Assembly (NCBI GenBank): GCA_002269645.1
Contig: NIVC01000019.1
Span: forward strand, 124,001 to 188,000
From: Macrostomum lignano
Lineage: Eukaryota
Length of the DNA stretch: 64,000 nt
Direction of reading: 5' to 3'
The translations under genes were made by a program, and so were the position numbers. Shown in pieces: positions 9,552 through 54,922 of this stretch; positions within the stretch are counted from its first letter, which is position 1; each line of letters begins with the position of its first letter. The notes beneath the pieces are model-generated. The model searched no databases, had not been told where the DNA came from, and was given only the letters and a program-made list of their open reading frames with translations.

Positions 9552-11669
9552 CTACATCAGGTAGCGTCTATCAACAACATAGACTTTTCCATTGTCGCAG
9601 CCGATAGCAGCTTGGCCACTTTCCAACGGGCAGAGGCAGATCGCTGGCCAAGGCGTCTTCACTGACTGGAAGCTGGCGCGCCACAAGTTGACGCCAAGGA
9701 AGCTGAAAACGCGAAGGGTCCGGTCGCTGGTCCAGCAGCACAGCAGCAGGCGGTCGCCAAAGAACTCCAGGCAAGGCGGCGTCTCCGATTCGAACGTCCC
9801 GCCGTCTGGCGCGCCCCAGTCGCTCGCCTCAACTGTAGTTTTAGCCGGCTTCAGATGGAACGCGCGCAGACGGTAGGTGCGGAGAGTCACGTGGTCGAGG
9901 ACGCACAGCCTGGCCGCAGTCGGATTCCAGGCCAGTCGCATCGGCGCCGACAATCGCAGTTTGTCACGAGCCAGCGTCGCTTTGCAAGTTTTAGGTGCGG
10001 TCAGGGAGACCAGGTAGATACCCTGGCTTGGCGAGCAAATTGCCAGAAACTTGCCAGTGCTCACGGCGTCCTCGGGTGCAGACAGGCGGTGACTGCAGAA
10101 TGTTATTTAAGAAAGATACGTGTACATACGTGTAAGTCACTATTGGCTAAGAAAAGTTATGTAACATCTGGCCCATCCCGCCACTTCAGTTTCTGTGGCT
10201 ATGATTCATACAATGCACACTTACAGTAAGCGTCTGGAAGAAATATGAGACTTACACGCAGCTAAAATACGGACCAACAGTGAGAATCGGTGACAAGTTT
10301 TGCCTGGCCAACAGGTGCACCTGACAGTTGGACTTGTCAATTAGGATAAGCGCATCCCATTCTCTAAACGAGCGAATACGATAGGCATTCTTCACGCGAG
10401 GGCCAATGTTGCGAGCTGTGCTAAACTTTCCACTTGAATCGTACACGGAAACACTTTTTGGATACGACTCAATTGAGTAGAATTCGTCAGGTAAATAGGC
10501 TAGTGACTTCGCTTTCTCACGGAGACTGATTGACAGTTGGCAAGGAAACGGCGATGAATCGCTACTTGAGGAATTTTGTTGCTTACTAGATGAGGAACTT
10601 AGAGACTGGTCTGCTGATGTAAAGTGATGTGACGCCTTTAGCTTATCCGTTTGAGGCGGTAGCCTCTTCTTCTCAACAATGCATGGAGATTCACTTAGGA
10701 TTGAAACGGAATAGCCTTTGCCGGTATCTGATACAGACGCACTTTGTCCAGAAGCTGACACAGGTGTACCTTTTCCAGTCGCAGAAGGCATAGATGCACC
10801 TTTACCTGTCGCTGACGGCATAGATGCACCTCTTCCAGTAGCTGACACAGACGAGTAGCGGCTATTTTGAGCTGATGCGGAACCAATTTTAGTAGAAGCA
10901 GACACATTACCACCTTCATCAGAGGTTGTTTCAGATGCGCCTTTGTTGGCATCCAATGTTATTTCTGTATTGAATACGGAACTCTGTAATGGTTTATAAT
11001 AGTAGTTATAATCACATGCATGCAATTGACTTTATATGATTGTATATTTTTCAAGTGAACTGATAGACACCATCAACTCACTTGTACACCAGCTTGCTTA
11101 TTTTGAACTTCTGACAAAGCAGAGCGCAAGTTCTCCGTGCTTAGCAGTGAATACGCAGAGAGAATTTCGCTTTCTTCATCACTCTCAACCTTCGCAGCGT
11201 CCACAGATGAGGCGAACGGGTTGTCTGCCTGGCGCCTCATCGTCCACTCGTCGTGCCAACTGATCTTTAGACTTTCCAGCAGACGCTCCGTTCGCCGCTT
11301 GGCCAGTTTTGTATCGAACTGCCCGATCTGCAGCAGGTCAGCTTCGCACCGCAGGCAAGCGTCAAGCCTCTGCTCGACATCGCAGTGAGTCGCTGAGTGA
11401 TCAGACTTATGATCACCGGAGCCCGTCAACTTCTCTGCATCCTCGGCAATAATGAGACTATTAATTCGCTGTTCAGGTGTCAGAGAGTGATCTTGAATCT
11501 CTCTGAGCAGGCCGGCTCTGCAAATCTCCAACTTGGCGATTGTATCGTTGAAAAACTCGTTCACCTGCCTGAGCAGCTCTTTGTTGTCAGATGCGCGGTT
11601 AATCAGCGACCGGAGCTGCGTAGACTTGAACTGCATTGCCCCCGTGTCTATTATTGATGAGCGAGACAT
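9552..11669 (-). CDS. Array gene 4: coiled-coil + DNPF + Ser/Thr/Gly linker + NHL-like propeller (618 aa); exons 11669-11082, 10983-10256 and 10092-9552
   Basis: Introns 10984-11081 (phase 0, CAA|GTGAGT...ttacag) and 10093-10255 (phase 2, GT|GTAAGT...ttctgcag). Exon lengths 588+728+541 close the frame. The junction reads GPYFSC-V-HRLSAPEDAVSTG. Confidence 0.88.
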
Positions 11670-13159
11670 TCGGCAAGCTGAAATAGGACGTTTGAAAATA
11701 CGCGTAAATTACAACTGCTACGGTGCAAGACTGACTGGCTTCAAGGTAAAACAGGTGCAACTGTAAGCTCGTTTTAACCACAATTAGAGCTTAGAAACGT
11801 TAGATAGATAGCCTATTTGATGCCCAAGCTATACTGTCATTTGTCTGAAGCTTCACGTCTGGCTCTATCTGAAATATTTTTGACAGCCTTTTTAAAAGAA
11901 AATTACCTAGTACTGTGGAGGTTCTACCACCGGAACCTCCCTTATGTAACTAAAATTCAATGCATAATAGCAAAAAATAAAGCAAAGAAGCATAGCAACT
12001 CCAAAAAAGCCAATGGCAAAAGTATATATTTAAATGCCCACTTTGACGCCACACAATCAGTAAAACGCAGCTGCTTGAACGAACAAACTTGCTAGACATG
12101 GAAGCTTCTCTAAAAAAGAAATGCTAGCTTTGAACGACAAAAACGGTGACCACAAAAAGAATAAATTTATATAAAAACTCTTATGAGAGGTTAATAACTA
12201 TACTTGACGAAACCTAATAGGACCCCAGACACAGAAATTATTTAGTGCCTTTAGACAGTTTTGCATTGCCACCAGCACAAGCTCTACTTGCTCAAGCTAA
12301 TTACGGCTCGAGGCGCAGCAGGCTGACGCGGCAGCCGCGCTTATCGCAGACTGCCAGGCGACTGCCGCCATCCCCGACCGGATCGTCGACCCAGCAAACG
12401 TCGGTCAGACGCTCCCAGTTACCGAACTCACACGTGTAGTTCAGCCTGCGCAGCGGATTTCGGTCCAGTCGACGAAAAGATTCATCGCGAAACTGCATCA
12501 ACTCGTAGCCATCGACGATGACGGCCAATGGCGAAAAGCCGCTGCCGCCAGACGGCAGGTAGGCGATCTCGGGCGTCCTGTCCGAGGCCAGGCACGCGTA
12601 GAATTCACTGTTCAGTATGAGACCACCTGACGGTTTGTGACAGTTGGCGAATTCAAAAGCGCGCGCAACGTAGCGACCGTCTTCATCGTCCACAACCACC
12701 AGATGGCCGGCCGACTCGCACCAGGCCATGCGGACCGGCTGCTCGAGGTCCAGATATTCACAGGTCTGCGTCACCACGCGAACGGCGCTGTAAGCGGAGT
12801 CGACAACAAGGATAAAAATGCCAACCAATGGGCAACAGATAAAGAGACAGCTGCCGTTGCTCACAGCCTGCTCAGGATTCTCAAGAAAGTACCTGAAAAT
12901 GAGAACATTTGATTGATCTTGTTTACGAGTAGAAACTTGCTTATATTATAGTTTGTCCGCTAACTAGAGCAAACTCTAATAATACCGACTATGGCTAGAA
13001 CACATGATAATAATCAACCACAGAAGGCTTGCACTACTACGGAGGCAGTGTAACTTTAGGTTCAGTTGGTTTGCAGGCGGCTTTTAGCACTGTGGCAAAT
13101 CAAAGCGAGTCAATCTACAGCCCATGACAAGATAAACATCCACGCCCATTTTGTTTAAC

Positions 13160-13392
13160 CACCCTGAGCACGCAGGTATGTGCTCACATAGGGAGCATAG
13201 CGACCCAGACTTTTTATCGTCAGGCATGTACAAACTCTGTGCCTTAGGGGTTTGGCCCAGATGTAAGACAATCGCACAATCCCCAAATCAATATTTTAGT
13301 GCACGGGGCCCAAATTAATGTGGTCGCGCACGCCATCAAACCTGGTGACTTTGGTGCGAGAGTCGGGCGCGTTACCGCTGAGCTGCTCTACT
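13160..13392 (-). mobile_element. tRNA-derived SINE (family A) in the intron of gene 5
   Basis: The reverse strand has a tRNA-like head (AGCTCAGCGG box A, degenerate box B) followed by cattaatttggg and gtacatgcc.gacgataaa, shared with the copy at 37880-38146. Confidence 0.6.
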
Positions 13393-31358: not shown

Positions 31359-34300
31359 TCATCCATAAAGTGGACGCCGAAAGGCTAAAACGGAGCCTTT
31401 CGCATCGCAAATAATAGCTTCACCAAAGCTGCTCGTCTCCGGTGGAAGCCAGCAAATATCTCTTGGGCTAATGTCTTCAATAGTAGCGCTGCAGTGCTCA
31501 GCAGCTAGATGCATGGCATTAGTGGGAAGCCAACTAATAGTACATGTTGAATCTGAAACCCAAACAAGTACCATTTCGTCAGCTTTAAGCAGGACATTCG
31601 GCGCCACCGATGACTGAATCGTCAATCTGGGAGCCGGGAGTGCCGTCAATTGACAGCAGTCAATCTTAAAGGCTAAAATTCTATACTCCTCAGTCTTTAT
31701 AGAGGTTCGATCAACTACGAGCAGCGTTTCTGACTTGTTACACCAGGCCATTCGCACAGGACAGGACATCTTTAAATCGGTGGAGCATAGCTTAATTTCG
31801 GTAAGGTTATCAAAAATAGCCGTGTAAATGCGACCACCAGGACAGGCAATAATCAGCTGACGGCTTGTACAAATTGCGTCCTCAAAGCCTCCTTTAGGAA
31901 CTTTAAGAGAGTGCAAGAGACGACCCGCAGGATTAACACAAGCAATTTGCTTGTTGGTGGGATGAGAAACTATAATCGACTGTCCAGTGCAGCTAAGTCT
32001 AATGCGGTGAGCAGTGATATCAACGGCTTCACCACTAAGCGTGCACAGACGAATACTTTCTAACTTTTTACCTGTCAAGTTATAAACACTGAAGCAACCC
32101 CGGCCAGATCCTTCTGAAACGTAAATTCGATCGGAAAGAACAGCTGCAGACTTCGGCTTCGAAACTTTAAATAGTTGTAAAACATTCTGCGCGTGTGAAG
32201 CAACCTGTTCAGTTGGACCTTTTCCAGCAAATCTTTCGCTATTTATGCGAGAATTGCTGTGTAAAGTTGAGTCGCTGTGATTTTTACAGGCGGTTAGAGC
32301 TTTCACAGTGTGAGATGCGTTGTCAGTCTTCGGCATGGGACATCCTTTGATCAGCGTTTCCGAAACAACTTCTGTAAAAAAATCATTGGCAAGGCGAACT
32401 ACGTCGACTGAAACATCTAAGGTGTGCAGTTCTGCATCACCTGTAAGTAGCGAAGACGCACCCATGCCAACAGCATGTTCATCCTCTCTGCTCATTACTC
32501 CTTCTGCTTCCGTCCTATCAGTTGGAGCTCTATCCGCAGCGATGCCCTCGGTTGGCTCACATTCATATTGAGTAAGATTCGCTGCAGAATCAGATTTCGC
32601 AGATTGATGCTGCAGGCTGCTGCAAAAAATCAGGGTTTGAAGAAAGAATTGCATTTTAGTATACAACTTACGATCTTAACGATCTCGAACTTTAATTTTC
32701 ACTTAAAAATGAAAGATATAAAAAGAAAAAAATAAGAGCTTACCTGTAAGAAATAACTATAACGTAGCCTGAGTTCTTACAAACAGCAAACGTGCCCTTT
32801 TCTGTAGGCACCCAATTCATGTCGATAGGAAACGACTCTATTCCAGTTTTACAGCTTTCCAGTTCGAGCAAATCGTATTGAGCGGACATCGAGTCTGAGT
32901 TAGATGCTAACCAACTAAAAACTGCCGTAGTACCATTAAGTCTTCCAATTACAAGTTCACTGTCATTCATGATAGCGCTGGGAATCACCGATGAGTCAAT
33001 AGCCAAACTTGGAAAATCCAATAATTTTAAACCCTGATCACATAGCTGAAATGCTCGAATTCGATAACTGTCAGAGTTAGTTTCGTTAACGTCGACAACA
33101 AGCAAGGTTACAGAATTGCTGCACCATGCTAGTCTCACTGGAAGCAATGGCTCTGGAACGCCAAGAATATCGAGCTGGGATAGTTGCTCAACATTATCTA
33201 AAGAGGAAATGAATATGCCACTTGATGGAAAGCATGCAATTATATGCTGGCCTGTGCTAATCGCATCTTGTAAGCCAGAATGCGTATTTATAATAGCATC
33301 GACTATTCCATTAGGTCTGGCGCACACAATTCTATCATTGCTCTGGTCGATAAGGATAATCCATTGCTTAGCTTGACATGAGCGAAGGATACTTGGAACG
33401 CAGGCTACTTGGCGGTCATCGTGTCTTTTAAGGACAAATGCCCCGCGTGCGAAACCAGAACTCGTATACACATTAATTGGACGAGACGATGTCGATCCCA
33501 AAACATAAAACTGCTTCTTCAAGTACGTCACGGAGATGGGATTCATAAAAGTACGAAACTTCCGCACAGATATAGATCGAGAGTTAGTAAAGTCCGAATG
33601 GTTGGAAGAGAATCCATCATCGTGAGTATCAAACAGTTTAGAAGATTTAACAATGTTTCGATCTTCATAACTGCTTTGTTGGTTATAGAAAAATTGCGAC
33701 GCTCCAGCTTCAGTGTCAGTGAACAAGCTTCCAGAAATCTCCGAGCAAGTAATGGCGGAGAAAGGTTCTGACCATTCAAGCCCCTGATCCCTGGAACATA
33801 CAGACGCGGATTGCTCACAAGTAATGGATACATCTGTGTCTGATTTCACAGAAGCTTGATATTCCAAAGATTCTGCATCAACCAGCTCAGTTTCTTTCTC
33901 TGTGCTGCTGTCAGCCATCCTGCTACTGATTGTCGGCTTCTCATCGACACTTTTGAGAGCAGATTCGTCACGTGGAGCTTCCATGCAAGCGATTTCTATG
34001 GTAGCAGCTAAAGTAGGCTGGTCGATTCTTTTCGACAAAGTATAGTCGCTTTGGTCCGATGACGCAGCGGCGAGACGGTCACCTATTTCGCTATTCTCGT
34101 CACGGTTTACAGAAGAATTCGAGTCTTTTTGGTTGTCTCTGGCACGACCCTGAATAGAAGCTGCACATTCAGGGCCTTCTGAGTTTTGACGGGAGGCCGA
34201 CTCTTTGTCAATAATCTCACTAACCTTTACTTCTTCCCAATGAACTGCCAGGGCTAGCAAAAGCTTTTCAATTTTTTCTTCAATATCGATTGTGTTCCAG

Positions 34301-35808: not shown

Positions 35809-38800
35809 TCAACTTAGCTCAGCAATTTGCTCAACCACAACCACACTACCATTTACAGCGTCGCCAAATACAGCACCTTGACCGTTGCGAAAAGTACACA
35901 GAGCAGTTGGACGAGTCACCGAACCAATGGCAGAGTCGACGTCCTTAGCAACGGTAACAACGCCCAACCCGGAGTTGGCGAGATTAATTAGCAACAATCT
36001 GCAGACTTCTCTTATTCCATTGTCACCAAGGCAGACAGCGGCCGGCAGGATTAGTCGATCCCGGCTGTACACCATCAGCCCAGTCAGCACCAAAGCCGAC
36101 GACGTAGCAAATGGAAGCGAATTGAAGTTCAGGCGTCGGATAGGCGAGAAGGACAGCGGCGCCAGCGGAGTCCGCGCCAGGCCGCAAAGCACTACCGCCG
36201 ACGGTTGCGATCCGGCCAAGGCCGCTGACGCAACAGCCAGGAGACTGTGGCTTTGGCACCAAGCCAAGCTGGCAGGCCGGCTGACGCTCAGAGATTCGCC
36301 GGACTGACGTTGCCACACGGCCGGGGCGAGGCCGGGCTGGCTGGCGGCCAGCAGCAGGCAGTTGGTGTCCGGACAGGCCACGCAGACAAGTCCGGCGTCG
36401 GATGCGGCAACATCCGTAGCACCGGTGGCAACTTCGGAGCCTTAAACAGTTATTGAAGCGTCGAAGGAGTCATTGAAAAGTCATCGGCACTTGGCAAACC
36501 AGGGCTATAGTGGTGCATTGGCACTTTTAGTGTTTTTTACACTAAGCAGATGTACAGTGGTGCAAATTGTTGGAAATTCCAACTCACTCATTTAAAACAA
36601 AGTGCTCTACCTTCAAGCGTCCACAGAAGACAACCCGACGGCAGCTGAAAGGCGCGCACAGAGGTGCTGGATTCGCCAGTTCGCGCCAAAACGAACAGCG
36701 CGCCGCGTCCACCGATGACAGCCGATCGAACCGCGCCGATTCCAGTCAGCGCAGTTAAGCCTGGCGGCAGGGGCTGCTGCTGGCCGCGAATGTCGTAGCA
36801 GCCAAGTCGACCGATTTTTTTTAAATCAGAGTCTTCCTGTTCAACCACGTACAGCCGGTCATTGTGGCAGGCAATAGAGAGCGGCGTGCCGGCGTTGGCG
36901 GTGCGAAAACGCCAGGAGTTTGCGCTACTGGAGGCAGAGGTCGAGGCTGAGACGGCGGAATTGTCGGCGCTTGAGGCAAGCGAATTGGAGCGCTGAGGAT
37001 TGGCGAAAATACGAAGACTAGTCATTGCGCGAACAAACAGATATAGAAATTTGGCACGATTCAACGAGTTTTAAAATTAATTATATGGTAATACATCTCC
37101 TTTTGAGATTCATTTGATTTATACTCGATTAAAATCCCAGACACTAAACTGGTGCATAGCCATGCTTGGGCACCCGCGCAACCTCGGGATTCACCCGGCC
37201 GTTTCTATTGGCAATACACACATGTAAGTCGCTATTGGACGGAATAGTAGTCACGTGACTGCTCTCAGCCAATAGCGACTTACATGTGTGTGTGTTGCCA
37301 ATAGAAACGGCCGAGTGATTTCCAAGGTTGCGCATGTGTGCAGCATAGCCGGCAGCAGTCTGACGTAGCAGCGTGGGAGATTTTAAACAGACAAACCATA
37401 GACAACAGAAATCAATTTGGGCATCAATAACTGAGCCACAGGTGGAATGCATGACTAAAGTAAAGAATGTCACAGAGAGGACCAAACGCCGAAATCAGTC
37501 TGGTGGACAGAAAGAGAATCGTGAATGCATGCGTGACTGGTGGTTTGGAGTTTGGTGTTCGTGAAAGAAAGCAAATCGATAGAGACGACGAATAGAATAA
37601 AAACGACAAGATTTTTCACACTAAAAGGCGCCAAAAGTACGAGTAGTATTAAAAGTCGCCTAGGAGTCTCCTTGTAGCGTCTTATTGTCTGCGACTTTGA
37701 AACGACTCGTATTCGAAGCGTGCTATAGTCGTGTTTGAAGCGCATTTGCGTCGCATGATGAATTAGAGTGACATTTATTATTTTTTTATTAGAGGCAGGG
37801 GGGTTGTGTGCACCCTGGCGCACTTTAAGCGACATAGGCACACAACCGGCGAGAGGCATTGCTGCCCATTCCGCCGACTCCCCTGAGCAGGCATACAAGC
37901 GCGCGGATACGTACGCAGGCACACACTCACACAGGAGTGTACAGCGGCCCTAACTTTATTTTATCGTTGGGCATGTACACTTCACTGCGCCTTGGGGGGT
38001 TGGTTGGCTCTCGAGACCGTTAATTGCACGAGCAGAGCCAAGCCGAAATTCCAATTCAGCCCCAAATTAATGTGACTGCACTTGGAATCGAGCCTGGGTC
38101 GCTGGCACACCAGAGCAGCTGCGCTACCGCTGGGCTACGGCCCCCCTAGAAAAATGTATGCCGCCAACACACACGATTCTTGGATTCTATCAAGACTTAC
38201 GCGTTTGAGTCGTTAAAGTAAGTCACAAAAGTCACTCCAGAGTCGTTTTCTAAAACCTAGTCTAATCAATTTTTCCAAAAAACGAATAAAGTTTCGGACT
38301 GAGACTCGACCTTGGATAGTTGTGATGCAGAAAACTTTAGAGCTTCTCAATCAATTTTCATCGGGAATGGTCTTATTTAAAATAAAATAAGCAGTTTGTT
38401 TTTCAAGTTTCTTAATTTAAAATGTAAATGTTCAGAGCACCGGCCCATATACTTGTAATTCGCTCGGAAGTAAAGCCCATGGAGGTGTCGACACGCATGG
38501 ACTAAATTAATGCTAGAATACTCATTAAGTTACCCATATTGCATTTTCGGCTGGCATGATTTTGCTTATAGTTCAGTGACCTCTCTGGGGAATATACGCG
38601 TATAATATCTATGGCGACGCATTCACTTACGTTAGCTAAAACAGCACGGTAAGCAGGTTCACTGGCAACCAGTTGCTTTGCCTTATCATTGGCCGTCTTT
38701 GCCTCTATTCTGGCGCTGATATTGGCTTCAACTGTGTCGCCAGTGCCGCCAGCAGCTGAGAAGGACTCCGTCAACGGTATGAACAGGCTGGAAAGGCGAA

Positions 38801-41800
38801 GTGCAGCACCTGAGATAACAGTGCTGACTGACCTGATTGAACTTGCAGCTGGCAAGAGAAGCGGTTCAATGCCGTCAGCGGAACGGAAGCCGCAATTTGG
38901 GCAGGCAAGGTCGCGAGTTCGAGCATCCTGTAGCGCGACGAGACAAGGTGCGCAGAACACGTGGCCGCAAGGCACCCGTCTCGGATCAATAAATGACGCG
39001 TTGCAGACGTTGCAGGTTTGAGTGATGTCCCTATTCTGCTGCGCCTTGTCTGGGAGAGCATTTTCTTGACTGGACAGGCTGCAGTCTTTTAGATTGGCTG
39101 TGTAACCAGTGTTCTTTGTCTCTTCATTAACATTGGATTGAGCACTAGCCATTTCTGAAGCTTTCACTGACAAAGAAGGTACTTCGCAGGGGGCAGAAGC
39201 CATCGACGCAGTGATATTAGAGGCACTAAACGTCTCAATGCTTGGCCCAGCAGAAGATTTTTGCTTACGCGCAGTGGACACAGCAACTGTTGCTACGTCA
39301 GCTGTAGCCGACTGATTCGCTAAGTTGGCCGGTTCTCTAAAGGAAAATGAAAAGAAAGGAAGTTGAAATCTAGTCGCGGAACAAGTCTATAGAATTAATT
39401 TAAGAATAAATAACCGAAATTATACTTTTAGCCGAGTCAGACATTCGATTTATCCATCTGATTCTAGATATGCTTACGAAGGTACCTAAAAAGTTTTTGG
39501 ACTTGACCCTTTTTGAGCAAAGTCAGTGCACCAAACTTTCACACCTTTTCAGAGTACCCCCCCACTCTGAATGCAGCGCTCCATACAAAGAAACCAGGCT
39601 TGAAAGCACTGGGACCACTGGAGGCTCTGTAGGCTTCCTCTTCGTCATGGAATTAAAGTTCCAAGAAGTTTTTCCTTGGCTAGTGCAAACAAAAAGTAGT
39701 CCCACGGTGCCAAGTCAGGAGAATAAGGCGGATGGGGAAGCAGCTGAATGGATTTCTGAGCCATGAAATCCACATTGCGAGCTGCTGTGTGTGCACAATG
39801 GCATTTTCGTGGTGCCACAACAGACCGCACGTTCCGCTGCGAGGTCTCTTCTCGCGCCACTTCTGCAGAACCTCTGGAACGCATACTGTTGTGTACCATT
39901 CTGCATTGACTGTTCTTTGCTTATTAAGTGGCACAATCGCCAAATCGCCTGTTATGGAGAAGAAAGTGGCGACCATCTTTGAGTTAAAAAGCTAAAAATT
40001 TAGGAAATGACCGAGGAAAGGATGTTCGAGTCCAAAAAATGTTTAGGTACCCTCGTATAATAGCCAACGCTTCAAATTAGGTTGCCTATTTGCTATAGGA
40101 AAGGCACACAACATATCGAAAGGTGAACATTGGGTCTGCCTCCTATAGCAATAACAATTTTAATATGAAAAAGGGAAAAGTTTCTATCTCCGCAGTGTAT
40201 TGTTCAGCGAACACCAGCCTCTTTAACATTTTCTAAGAAACGTGGTTTACCGCCCTACTACTTTGAGTAGTCCTTGGCCAACACACAAAGAGCACTACTC
40301 ACGCTGGCCTATCAATAAACAGTACGGAGCCGAGCTTGTCCCAGACTGCCACAGTCTGGCAGTTGTCATCGTCGCTCGTGCTTGTTACATCGGCTGGCAG
40401 GCACTGCGCCAGCTGCACCTGGCGCACCGAGTAATCATCTAGCGAGGTGGCGCCCGGCGGCACCCAGCTGACAACTAACCGGCCGAGCCAGTAGCGCGCC
40501 ACAACCAGCTCGCCATCTGCGCGCACCAGCAGCGCCGGCAGAGTGGCCGATTGAAGAGATACACAATGCCGCTGGGCTGGCCGAAATTCCGCTGTTGAAG
40601 TGGCCGAGTTTGCATTGATTTTATAAGCGCGGATCGAATACTCGGAGCTGCTGTCGGCTAATTGGTCTATGACCAGCAGCAGCCTGTACTGCCGGCACCA
40701 GAACAGGCGCTTGGGCTGCACGGGTGCGTTGGACTTAAATGTGCACCTGTTGGTGATGTTAAATCAGCATTAGGAATGTAAATAGGGAATGTCAACCAAA
40801 GCACCGGGATGTAGCCAATCTATAACTTGTTCGACTAGCCGATTAGAGAGGCCGTGACATCTCACCCATACCCCTCCTTTGAAGAAGCTTTGGACTTTTA
40901 TAGGATAGGAAATTTATCGGAGTCTACAAATTGACTGCCTCAAATTCTAACCAATTTGAAAAAAAGAATATAAAAAAGAAATTAAAGTAACTCTTCATGC
41001 GATTTTTTACACATCAATACAATGTCGTGTGCTGTCAAGAAAGCTTTCACCAACCCTGTTGTATACCTAAGGTCAACTTTGTTAGAAAAACTGAAACTTT
41101 CTAAGCGGTATGCCAACATGTGTAAGCCAAGGACTACTCAACTAGAAGGACGGGGAAACTAATTTTCTTAGAAAACGTTAAGGAGGCCTAAGGTTTTGCC
41201 GAAAAATACACTACAGAGATAGGACCTTTTCCTTTTTTCATATTAAAATTGCTATTGCTTTCGATAGGAGGCAGAGCCAATGTTCAGCTTTTGATATGTT
41301 TTGCCCTTCTTATAGCTCTATTGATATTTTTATTCTACGTACAATTGCATATGTCCTGTGCCTAAAAACCATTAAAATGGCACGGCTCGGCTCACTGGTT
41401 TTATGAATATATTTTAATATCTCAGCTGACTGTGTAAGAATATGTGTGACAGAGATGATAAAATAGATTCATAAAACTAGAGTCGAGCAGTGCCATGCAT
41501 TTTTATGACTTCTAGGTACAGGGAATGTACGTAGAATAAAAATCTAACATTTGAATCCTAATTTTCTGAACAAAAATCTTTATTAATATCAATAGAGCTA
41601 TAAGAAAGACAAAACATATCAAACTGCCTCCTATCGAAAGCAATAACAATTTCAAAATGAAAAAGTGAAAAGTTCCTATCTCTGTAGTGTATGTTTTTCG
41701 AAAAACCCAGCCTTTTCGGCCCTTGTAGCTGAGTAGTCCTTGGTGTAAGTTAGCATATTCATGATTGTTTATTCCTACGTACAACATCGTCCAAAAACCG

Positions 41801-43065
41801 CTAGTTTTATAATCATGGTGGCTATGCCACCAAGAAGTGCATCTCGAATCCACCGATGGACTTATTTAGGTCTGGGATTAAGATATTGTTGTATTTTAAT
41901 CGAAGTAAAAATGATGACATGTATTCATTTTGCTAACACACCTGTTCAAACCGCTTCCTTTATCAACAGGGGCAGTGTAAAATTGGTTGCGCTCAGAGCA
42001 GACAATCAGGTGTTGCCCAGTGCTAACAACGTCCACCAAGTCAGCCAAAATGCCAGCCACAGCGGTAACTTGGCCGCTGGTCTTGGCCCAGGCCACCCGC
42101 TTGTGCCCGGCATCGAGCAGGATCAGGCGATTCGACACGCGGCAGGCGGCAACCCGAACCGGCCAGGTCACTTTTTTGTCGGAAAATTTCACTTCTCCAA
42201 TGCTACGAGTCGCCGAACAATTTTCGTCGCTGCCAAGCGAATAGGCACCAAGGCGAACTTGTTCGATACCGCGAGAACCGGACACTTCTAGGCAGTAGTA
42301 GGTGTCCCCGAGGCGTGTTGCAGAAATCAGAGGCGAAAGAAGACGGACTGACTTGGACTGAGTTATTGCTCCAAAAAGAGCTGCATTTGATCTGCCCGAC
42401 TCAGCAACAGAACCTGCATTTGATCTGCCCGACTCAGCAACAGAACCTGCATTTGATCTGCCCGACTCAGCAACAGAACCTGCATTTGATCTGCCCGACT
42501 CAGCAACAGAACCTGCATTTGATCTGCCCGACTCAGCAACAGAACCTGTATTTAACCTGCCAGACGCCGACTCACTTAAACATCCAGAATTCGCAACAGA
42601 AGAAGGCAAAGTCGAACTGTTTGAATTCGAGGCAGAATCAGAAAAGCTCAGTACAGCATCTGCTGCAGTTTTCGCCGACTGTCTCGGTGACTGCACCGGA
42701 TTTTGGTCAACTTTGCTACCAAAATTTACCAACGAATAGCCGCCCCCAGCAACCGGAACAAAGGCGGTGGTCCTGTAACTGTCTGGCACAGGCGTCCATC
42801 GCAGTTCTAAACAGCGCATGAGCCTGGCAACTACGGACTTTAACTCGGCATCAGATTCTCTGCTTAATTTGTTCTCTACCGAGCAGTGCCGAGTAAGCTG
42901 TGCGAGTTGCCCTGAGAGACGGGCGAAAAAAGCATCAATGTTTGTCTGGCAACAGCCGACCGACTCTGTGGCGTCAAGGAGTCGACGAACAACGTCAGCC
43001 TTCTGACGGAGTCGCTGCCGGGCAAGCCGCACCGGGATCAGCTGACTATCAGCTGACTCTTGCAT
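35809..43065 (-). CDS. Array gene 12: helical N-terminus + propeller + C3HC4 RING + propeller (~1095 aa); exons 43065-41942, 40746-40303, 39336-38631, 36992-36611 and 36440-35809
   Basis: Four GT-AG introns with matching phases (2,2,0,1); exon lengths 1124+444+706+382+632 = 3288 nt, open throughout. Apparent ORF stops at 40299 and others coincide with donors (GC|GTGAGT, AAC|GTAAGT). Confidence 0.7.
37880..38146 (-). mobile_element. tRNA-derived SINE (family A)
   Basis: The reverse strand reads GGGGCCGTAGCCCAGCGGTAGCGC...GGCTCGATTCC (Pol III boxes A and B) followed by a non-tRNA body shared with 13160-13392 and partly with 43200-43330. Confidence 0.7.
38892..39014 (-). other. C3HC4 RING finger (TRIM-type) within gene 12
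   Basis: CNVC-x11-CGH-x2-C-x2-C-x13-CPNC, with the P..vPCGHvFC..CL signature. Confidence 0.9.
39477..40055 (-). mobile_element. Internally deleted mariner element (579 bp) in intron 2 of gene 12
   Basis: TA|cgaaggtacctaaaaagtttttggact ... agtccaaaaaatgtttaggtaccctcg|TA (27-bp TIRs, TA TSD). Frameshifted transposase C-terminus: VMATFF..G...TVNAEWY, LWHHENA, LLPHPPYSPDLAPWDYFLF. Confidence 0.92.
40092..41745. repeat. Three copies of a ~190-bp repeat: 40092-40285 (+), 41122-41325 (-), 41590-41745 (+)
   Basis: Shared blocks acatatc..aaag.tgaacattgg.tctgcctcctat, aattttaatatgaaaaa and gagtagtccttgg; roughly 80% identical by eye. Confidence 0.8.
42381..42560 (-). repeat. 33-bp coding tandem repeat (SNAGSVAESGR, ~5 copies) in the gene 12 linker
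   Basis: Unit ctgcatttgatctgcccgactcagcaacagaac repeated perfectly and in frame. Confidence 0.9.

Positions 43066-44121: not shown

Positions 44122-54922
<10,801 letters not shown>

Follow-up and report, generated by a model that had tools for sequence, protein, structure and literature searches.

The proteins most similar in design to the one described here are those of the class of TRIM32, Drosophila Thin (abba) and C. elegans NHL-1, which combine a TRIM-type C3HC4 RING with NHL propellers in the order RING, B-box, coiled coil, NHL. NHLRC1 (malin) is a RING-NHL E3 ligase that has neither B-box nor coiled coil, and Brat is RING-less but retains its B-boxes. Here we consider a gene on the minus strand of a 64-kb stretch of Macrostomum lignano DNA (the window), at positions 43065 to 35809, in which a RING of the TRIM type lies between two propellers, the order being helical domain, NHL, RING, NHL-like. 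We place at about 70% the probability that this locus is one transcribed gene, in which two neighbouring members of a tandem array, TRIM-NHL-derived and specific to this lineage, have been fused. This reading is favoured because the upstream part (unit A, exons 1 and 2) is a complete array member, because paralogues share the point at which it ends and because annotation derived from RNA sequencing (RNA-seq) carries the fused open reading frame (ORF). As judged from sequence, the layout is real and unusual, a tidy example of fusion in a fast-evolving, lineage-specific gene.

Compared with the TRIM-NHL class the M. lignano protein has no B-box detected by Pfam and has two propellers, not one. 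Its RING lies over 600 residues from the N terminus, whereas in TRIM proteins, which follow the RING, B-box, coiled coil (RBCC) scheme, the RING is N-terminal. Since both the N-terminal RING and the B-box are missing we describe the gene as TRIM-NHL-derived rather than TRIM. Malin has the same minimal layout as the downstream part of the gene alone (unit B, exons 3 to 5), a RING then an NHL-type propeller with no B-box. In M. lignano, however, the module continues a complete coiled coil-NHL (CC-NHL) protein, to which it is joined by splicing; the propeller is far more diverged, and no homology to malin was found at the sequence level. Being RING-less, Brat is comparable to the remaining members of the array and to the putative isoform that would retain intron 2, and its NHL domain is among the sequence and fold matches given below; the array proteins, in contrast to Brat, are without any Pfam-detected B-box. 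A HMMER scan, which included no search aimed at domain architecture, found no homologue elsewhere with the NHL-RING-NHL arrangement.

The gene model was rebuilt straight from the sequence. Five minus-strand exons are spliced to give an ORF of 3288 nt, comprising 1095 codons and a stop, that is open throughout. Exon 1 (43065-41942, 1124 nt, residues 1-375) encodes the N-terminal helical domain (approximately 43065-42790, assigned by its match to the array-family profile), a low-complexity linker with the 33-nt repeat and the first half of propeller 1, which starts at about 42369 and covers positions 1-137 of the family hidden Markov model (HMM) with E ~1e-54. The second half of this propeller is encoded by exon 2 (40746-40303, 444 nt, residues 376-523; HMM positions 134-279, E 4e-63). 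Exon 3 (39336-38631, 706 nt, residues 523-758), in which the first in-frame ATG occurs at 39203, carries a Ser/Ala-rich linker, the RING and a short stretch predicted to be helical. Exon 4 (36992-36611, 382 nt, residues 759-886) contributes a Ser-rich linker and, from about 36932, the first blades of propeller 2, with the remainder of this second propeller-like domain in exon 5 (36440-35809, 632 nt, residues 886-1095), which ends with the stop codon TGA at 35811-35809. The introns are all of the GT..AG type, in phases 2, 2, 0 and 1. In order, and with a slash at the splice point, the donors are CAG/GTGTGT, AGC/GTGAGT, AAC/GTAAGT and AAG/GTAGAG and the acceptors CAACAG/G, CCTTTAG/A, CCTCAG/C and GTTTAAG/G. 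For the last intron an exhaustive search of donor and acceptor pairs identified 36611/36440 as the pair yielding 3288 nt.

An earlier note on this DNA had proposed that five ORF fragments are joined by four canonical introns of these phases into a single 3288-nt frame. The rebuilt model reproduces that proposal and the public gene models cross every junction identically. The 1095-residue product runs from helical domain through repeats, NHL propeller, linker, RING, short predicted helix and a further linker to the NHL-like domain. The domain order given in the note stands for propeller 1, which is of NHL type, is supported more weakly for propeller 2, and holds for the helical domain only in the sense of a match to the N-terminal domain of the array. 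The SNAGSVAESGR repeats are present as described, on the minus strand at 42565-42381, with a 33-nt unit repeated 5.6 times according to Tandem Repeats Finder (TRF).

The RING is located at 39014-38892 on the minus strand (residues 631-671), exactly where the note had placed it. All eight zinc ligands are present in the spacing C-x2-C-x11-C-x-H-x2-C-x2-C-x13-C-x2-C, which is the canonical cross-brace of RING-type E3 ligases, and all are kept in the two GenBank proteins considered below. Pfam scores the 1095-residue product at 32.1 bits for zf-RING_UBOX and 29.0 bits for zf-C3HC4, both above the gathering cut-offs, and finds nothing else; for zf-B_box there is no match at E<=1. The pattern occurs once in the six frames of the 64 kb, which bears out the suggestion that this is the sole RING of the array. 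The best of the matches confined to the RING are proteins with RING and B-box, of the TRIM type. The approximately 90 residues that follow it contain no Cys and no His. A helix after the RING appears only in a low-confidence AlphaFold2 (AF2) model of unit B, calculated with a five-row alignment and set aside on account of its predicted local distance difference test (pLDDT) score of 41. The N-terminal profile of the array, applied to the residues after the RING and to the second unit of the neighbouring gene, found no coiled-coil remnant scoring above shuffled sequences.

The relationship to the array is most evident in unit A. There are some ten units of one CC-NHL family on the minus strand of the window, each consisting of an N-terminal helical domain (..FFD..L..RR.. 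and ..RLL..L.I.W..), a low-complexity linker and a C-terminal domain of about 280 residues (P.RLAWC..LLVVD). Unit A matches the profiles of both the N-terminal helical and the C-terminal NHL domains, the former with E 1.2e-5 and with 1000/1000 shuffled controls scoring lower. Unit B retains only the NHL-side motif RPASLAWCQSHSLLAVAS of the array signature. The single-unit paralogues stop at the position that corresponds by homology to the last residue of exon 2: the gene at 29927-28467 finishes with VRIHRPI and the unit ending at 31359 with AFRRPLYG, each followed directly by a stop, to be compared with FIDRPA and stop in the gene under discussion. Here the stop is the in-frame TGA at 40301-40299, which lies within the donor GTGAGT (40302-40297) of the 966-nt intron 2 (40302-39337). 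It is the end point shared by the paralogues, not the presence of a stop within the donor, that is informative with respect to fusion.

The events can be pictured as follows. Unit A is a standard array member, and its ancestral TGA would now form part of the phase-2 donor GC/GTGAGT. Splicing to the exon-3 acceptor would remove that TGA and continue in frame into unit B, which is predicted to open with a linker and the C3HC4 RING of the TRIM type, followed by a short helix, a linker rich in Ser and an NHL-like propeller that has diverged strongly. The acceptor, TTTCCTTTAG/A, is kept in both paralogous GenBank loci compared with the window (L001 and L002).

The gene model itself is already public, under the descriptions 'hypothetical protein' and 'RING-type domain-containing protein', and the only close database relatives are M. 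lignano proteins; the domain reading of the deposited protein appears to be new. GenBank entries PAA61812.1 (BOX15_Mlig007912g2, 1083 residues, complete, UniProt A0A267EM25) and PAA91374.1 (BOX15_Mlig013203g1, 1055 residues, partial) carry the same fused ORF. They derive from two paralogous loci, each with a five-exon product and with the same junction residues as in the window (GLNR/CTFK, IDRPA/E, VLAN/RSNS and TLEG/SEVA), and the main difference between them is the number of SNAGSVAESGR units. Three shorter UniProt models from an older assembly likewise cross the exon 2/3 junction, which makes five public models in all (P0001-P0005). Papers and supplements searched for Mlig007912 and Mlig013203 gave no match.

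The Mlig_3_7 genes, to which these entries belong, were not predicted ab initio. A StringTie assembly of RNA-seq data was merged, using TACO, with a de novo transcriptome that had been mapped; TBONE then divided the transcriptional units, and did so only where spliced-leader or poly(A) peaks had been located by experiment, after which ORFs were called with TransDecoder (Wudarski et al. 2017, PMC5730564). An ORF of 1083 residues therefore implies that intron 2 was spliced out in the underlying transcript, and the locus tag 'g2' that the unit was cut upstream of the RING gene and not within it. The earlier note had looked to a lack of any transcript across 40302-39337 as the sign of two separate genes. 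According to the RNA-seq-derived annotation, transcripts at two paralogous loci do span this interval.

Could there nevertheless be two genes in one transcriptional unit? Gene A would then end at the TGA, and B, encoding about 512 residues from the ATG at 39203, would give rise to an mRNA of its own, for instance if a spliced leader were trans-spliced to the exon-3 acceptor, leaving the fused mRNA as a minor conjoined or read-through product. Such an arrangement would suit an organism in which approximately 39% of genes are trans-spliced and approximately 7% of assembled transcripts are multi-gene precursors (PMC5730564). It would also suit the termination of the paralogues at the homologous residue and the occurrence of an ATTAAA sequence 137 nt past the TGA. 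Against this, TBONE made its cut upstream (g2), and at neither annotated locus did it separate exon 2 from exon 3; the 1083-residue ORF needs intron 2 to be spliced out and all five public models span the junction. Moreover, the donor and acceptor of intron 2 are kept in three copies, and the downstream neighbour, likewise made up of two units, is annotated as a fusion too. We consider separate genes unlikely. Of the two origins raised in the note, the joining of a CC-propeller gene to a RING-propeller gene is favoured over read-through, by the paralogue end points and by the transcript-derived fused ORF.

The two paralogous loci also allow an assessment of constraint on the fused gene. L001 shares approximately 97% identity with the window over a stretch that begins ahead of exon 1 and extends through exon 3, taking in introns 1 and 2. 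L002 is more diverged, with 93-99% identity in the exons and about 87% in the blocks containing introns 1 and 2. Eight of eight splice sites are kept in both loci, the GC/GTGAGT donor among them. Identity climbs at the exon-3 acceptor, from about 89% in the 113 nt upstream to about 97% in the 133 nt that precede the ATG, by our own count on the alignment. Exonic insertions and deletions are all multiples of three, either 33-nt repeat units or, in exon 3, segments of 12, 15 and 3 nt, and the 3.3-kb frame has stayed open in three copies, between which synonymous divergence reaches about 8%. The ratio of non-synonymous to synonymous substitution rates (dN/dS) per exon ranges from 0.18 to 0.78; exon 4 gives 0.18-0.25 and exons 1, 3 and 5 give 0.5-0.8.

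These data bear on a different explanation, that the fused ORF is transcribed but is a by-product of an array that duplicates and fuses rapidly, the RING and propeller 2 drifting and the protein having no ligase activity. The dN/dS values of exons 1, 3 and 5 are what this would predict, as are the unstable copy number of the repeat, the further fusions and splits in the array, the strong divergence and Ala/Ser/Leu-rich composition of propeller 2, and the restriction of homologues of the non-RING parts to M. lignano in a HMMER search of 1.84 billion representative proteins. A drifting frame would not be expected to stay open over 3.3 kb in three copies whose synonymous sites have diverged by as much as about 8%, to accept only in-frame insertions and deletions, to keep eight zinc ligands in every copy or to display a dN/dS of 0.18-0.25 in exon 4. 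We judge it improbable, more so than the existence of two genes, and retain the fused gene as the preferred reading.

The assignment of the first propeller is straightforward. Against a profile built from paralogues only, residues 233-523 match over 280 positions with E 5e-32. In the PDB the profiles of the array C-terminal domain, whether or not propeller 2 is included, find NHL propellers only. The best match is Drosophila Thin (TRIM32), with E values of 5e-9, 7e-4 or 4e-7 depending on the alignment used, followed by TRIM71, TRIM2, TRIM3, Brat and NHLRC2. By profile comparison the first domain is confirmed as an NHL-type propeller, six-blade-sized. The N-terminal helical profile of the array gives only weak, non-significant matches (E 0.2-1.6) to the TRIM25 coiled coil. 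Pfam detects no domain in the array paralogues scanned, and in the HMMER search just mentioned the non-RING parts of the product match only their own cluster (P0002) and P0006, the product of the neighbouring M. lignano gene. A word-indexed protein search with one NHL alignment (A1) gave no matches. Two other such searches returned only near-identical M. lignano clusters, low-complexity words having probably swamped both. Neither P0001 nor the exon-1 ORF in unspliced form had an exact counterpart in the contig index. A MAFFT alignment (A2) in which paralogues were set against the wrong propeller was discarded. We found no paper on this array family or on NHL proteins of Macrostomum. There are roughly ten array genes in the region whose annotation could be improved, Pfam reading only the RING of the gene described here.

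Propeller 2 (residues 779-1095) is strongly diverged and rich in Ala, Ser and Leu. Smith-Waterman alignment of this domain with propeller 1 and with the second NHL domain of the neighbouring gene gives z values of 6.1 and 5.2, with 0/300 shuffled sequences reaching the score. An HMM made from 18 fragments of the family within the window detects it, as two collinear pieces, with a score of 16.7 bits (E 2e-4), compared with 4.7 bits for the best of 1000 shuffles. In an AF2 model based on a 17-row family alignment, residues 11-220 of the domain have pLDDT values of 70-91 and are folded entirely as four-stranded beta blades. Comparison of this model with the PDB using Foldseek gave 135 matches at E<=1e-3. 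The best 50 of 135 are all beta-propellers and include the NHL domains of Brat and Mei-P26; TM values are only about 0.4 because the C-terminal third of the domain has no model. The identification of the second domain as a diverged NHL-type propeller, with approximately four blades predicted by the model, is supported more weakly than that of the first.

Several observations weigh against the view that the locus is one gene ending in a second propeller. The transcript support is second-hand, by way of an annotation pipeline, and StringTie may assemble read-through products or minor isoforms. We rejected the stop within the intron-2 donor as evidence of fusion, since any phase-2 intron with a GTGAGT donor will have one. 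In exon 3, the 133 nt ahead of the ATG differ from L002 by four changes, three non-synonymous and one synonymous, which are too few to measure coding constraint, and unit B read from the methionine at 39203 would have the usual N-terminal RING, as in malin or TRIM proteins. Both points would fit the presence of two genes. The dN/dS values of up to 0.8 suggest weak constraint. With regard to propeller 2, a four-sequence family HMM and hhalign both failed to detect it, the last 100 or so residues (221-317 of the domain) have pLDDT <50 in the AF2 model so that closure of the ring is not seen, and the alignment supplied to AF2 consisted of family NHL sequences, which may bias the model to that fold.

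The next gene downstream (34710-31359, minus strand) is of a similar construction and encodes a fusion of two NHL units, 1075 residues in length. A 656-residue ORF ends VISY/R and stop at a phase-2 donor, CAG/GTAAGC, that holds TAA (exon end 32744). After a 124-nt intron with the acceptor TTTTTTGCAG/C (exon start 32619) it joins in frame to an ORF of 435 residues. This gene too is annotated as fused, with 1054 residues in L002 and 833 in L001 (P0006), the junction reading VISY/SSLQHQ. The two genes share the succession of helical domain, NHL, stop-holding phase-2 donor, linker and second NHL domain; the neighbour differs in having no RING, in the short intron and in a second NHL domain that is well conserved in the family. 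A third multi-unit arrangement is found at 20119-18953 (minus strand), where the end of an NHL unit (..CDHKARKIYVLY) runs in frame through a linker, with neither stop nor intron, into blades 1-2 of the next unit. Multi-unit proteins are a habit of this array, the RING being found in the one gene only.

By analogy with TRIM-NHL proteins the RING may recruit a charged E2 and the two propellers may bind substrate or RNA. Retention of intron 2 would produce a RING-less CC-NHL protein of 523 residues resembling the paralogues, so that the splicing of this intron would determine the presence or absence of the ligase module in the product. That the gene specifies an NHL-RING-NHL E3 ligase with its module attached by splicing, and that a stop placed in a donor has been used at least twice in the array, perhaps to regulate multi-propeller proteins, is a tentative proposal, which we think more doubtful than not. 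If the protein is an active ligase, a TRIM-type RING could work far from the N terminus and between two substrate- or RNA-binding propellers, which bears on RING dimerisation and on substrate geometry outside the RBCC scaffold. The locus also represents a clear and datable fusion within a tandem array, with the old stop inside the donor and a sister gene built alike. Since the old stop survives and the sister gene has the same design, fused and unfused states can be compared within one genome.

In the repeat linker the GSVAESGR motif is, by our reading, present in five copies in the window and, counted by eye, in four in PAA61812.1 (P0004) and one in PAA91374.1 (P0003), the frame being kept every time that copy number changes between genomic copies. 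A different repeat occurs in L002 at 10989-13286, where there are about 42 tandem 56-nt units, each made up of the last 45 nt or so of exon 1 and the intron-1 donor (..TTTGAACAG/GTG[T/G]GTTAACAC). Each copy contains a potential donor, and none of the units are found in the window or L001. This array could be a real minisatellite or an artefact of long-read assembly. In exon 4, one UniProt model (P0005, A0A1I8GVG7) lacks 14 residues (IGRLGCYDIRGQQQ) relative to the window, a gap that could represent alternative splicing, a deletion in that copy or an artefact of prediction.

Two of the introns contain additional sequence. A degraded DDE-transposase fragment with the motif HPPYSPDLAPWDYFLF, which we take to be mariner/Tc1-like, lies within intron 2 at about 39991-39648 (minus strand) and gives a weak Pfam match to DDE_3 (E 0.013). 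The fragment is common to all three copies and so its insertion is older than their divergence. Intron 2 of L002 has an additional insertion of approximately 700 nt, and intron 3 of L001 an insertion of approximately 5.3 kb relative to the window (at about 14696-19991 of L001), in which a 97-residue gene is called on the opposite strand.

At the ends of the gene, an acceptor-like TTTTCAG/G (43082-43066, minus strand) is positioned 15 nt upstream of the start codon at 43065 and is probably the spliced-leader trans-splice site of the RING gene. The first AATAAA after the stop, a candidate poly(A) signal, is at 35510-35505 on the same strand, some 300 nt downstream. The upstream neighbour on that strand consists of two WD40 ORF fragments (44564-46425, minus strand), the tails of which both run into tandem repeats; in L001 and L002 the syntenic gene upstream encodes 509-510 residues with a PRP4 Pfam domain. 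In view of the 'g2' tag this upstream gene and the RING gene may belong to one transcriptional unit. Adjoining the WD40 ORFs on the plus strand (46881-50222) is an intact non-LTR retrotransposon ORF of 1113 residues with Exo_endo_phos_2, RVT_1 and RNase_H domains. Further along, at 50393-52046 on the minus strand, there is a long tandem array that can be read as repeats of about 25 residues in two frames, in a region of strong GC skew (+0.38 for 50001-52000).

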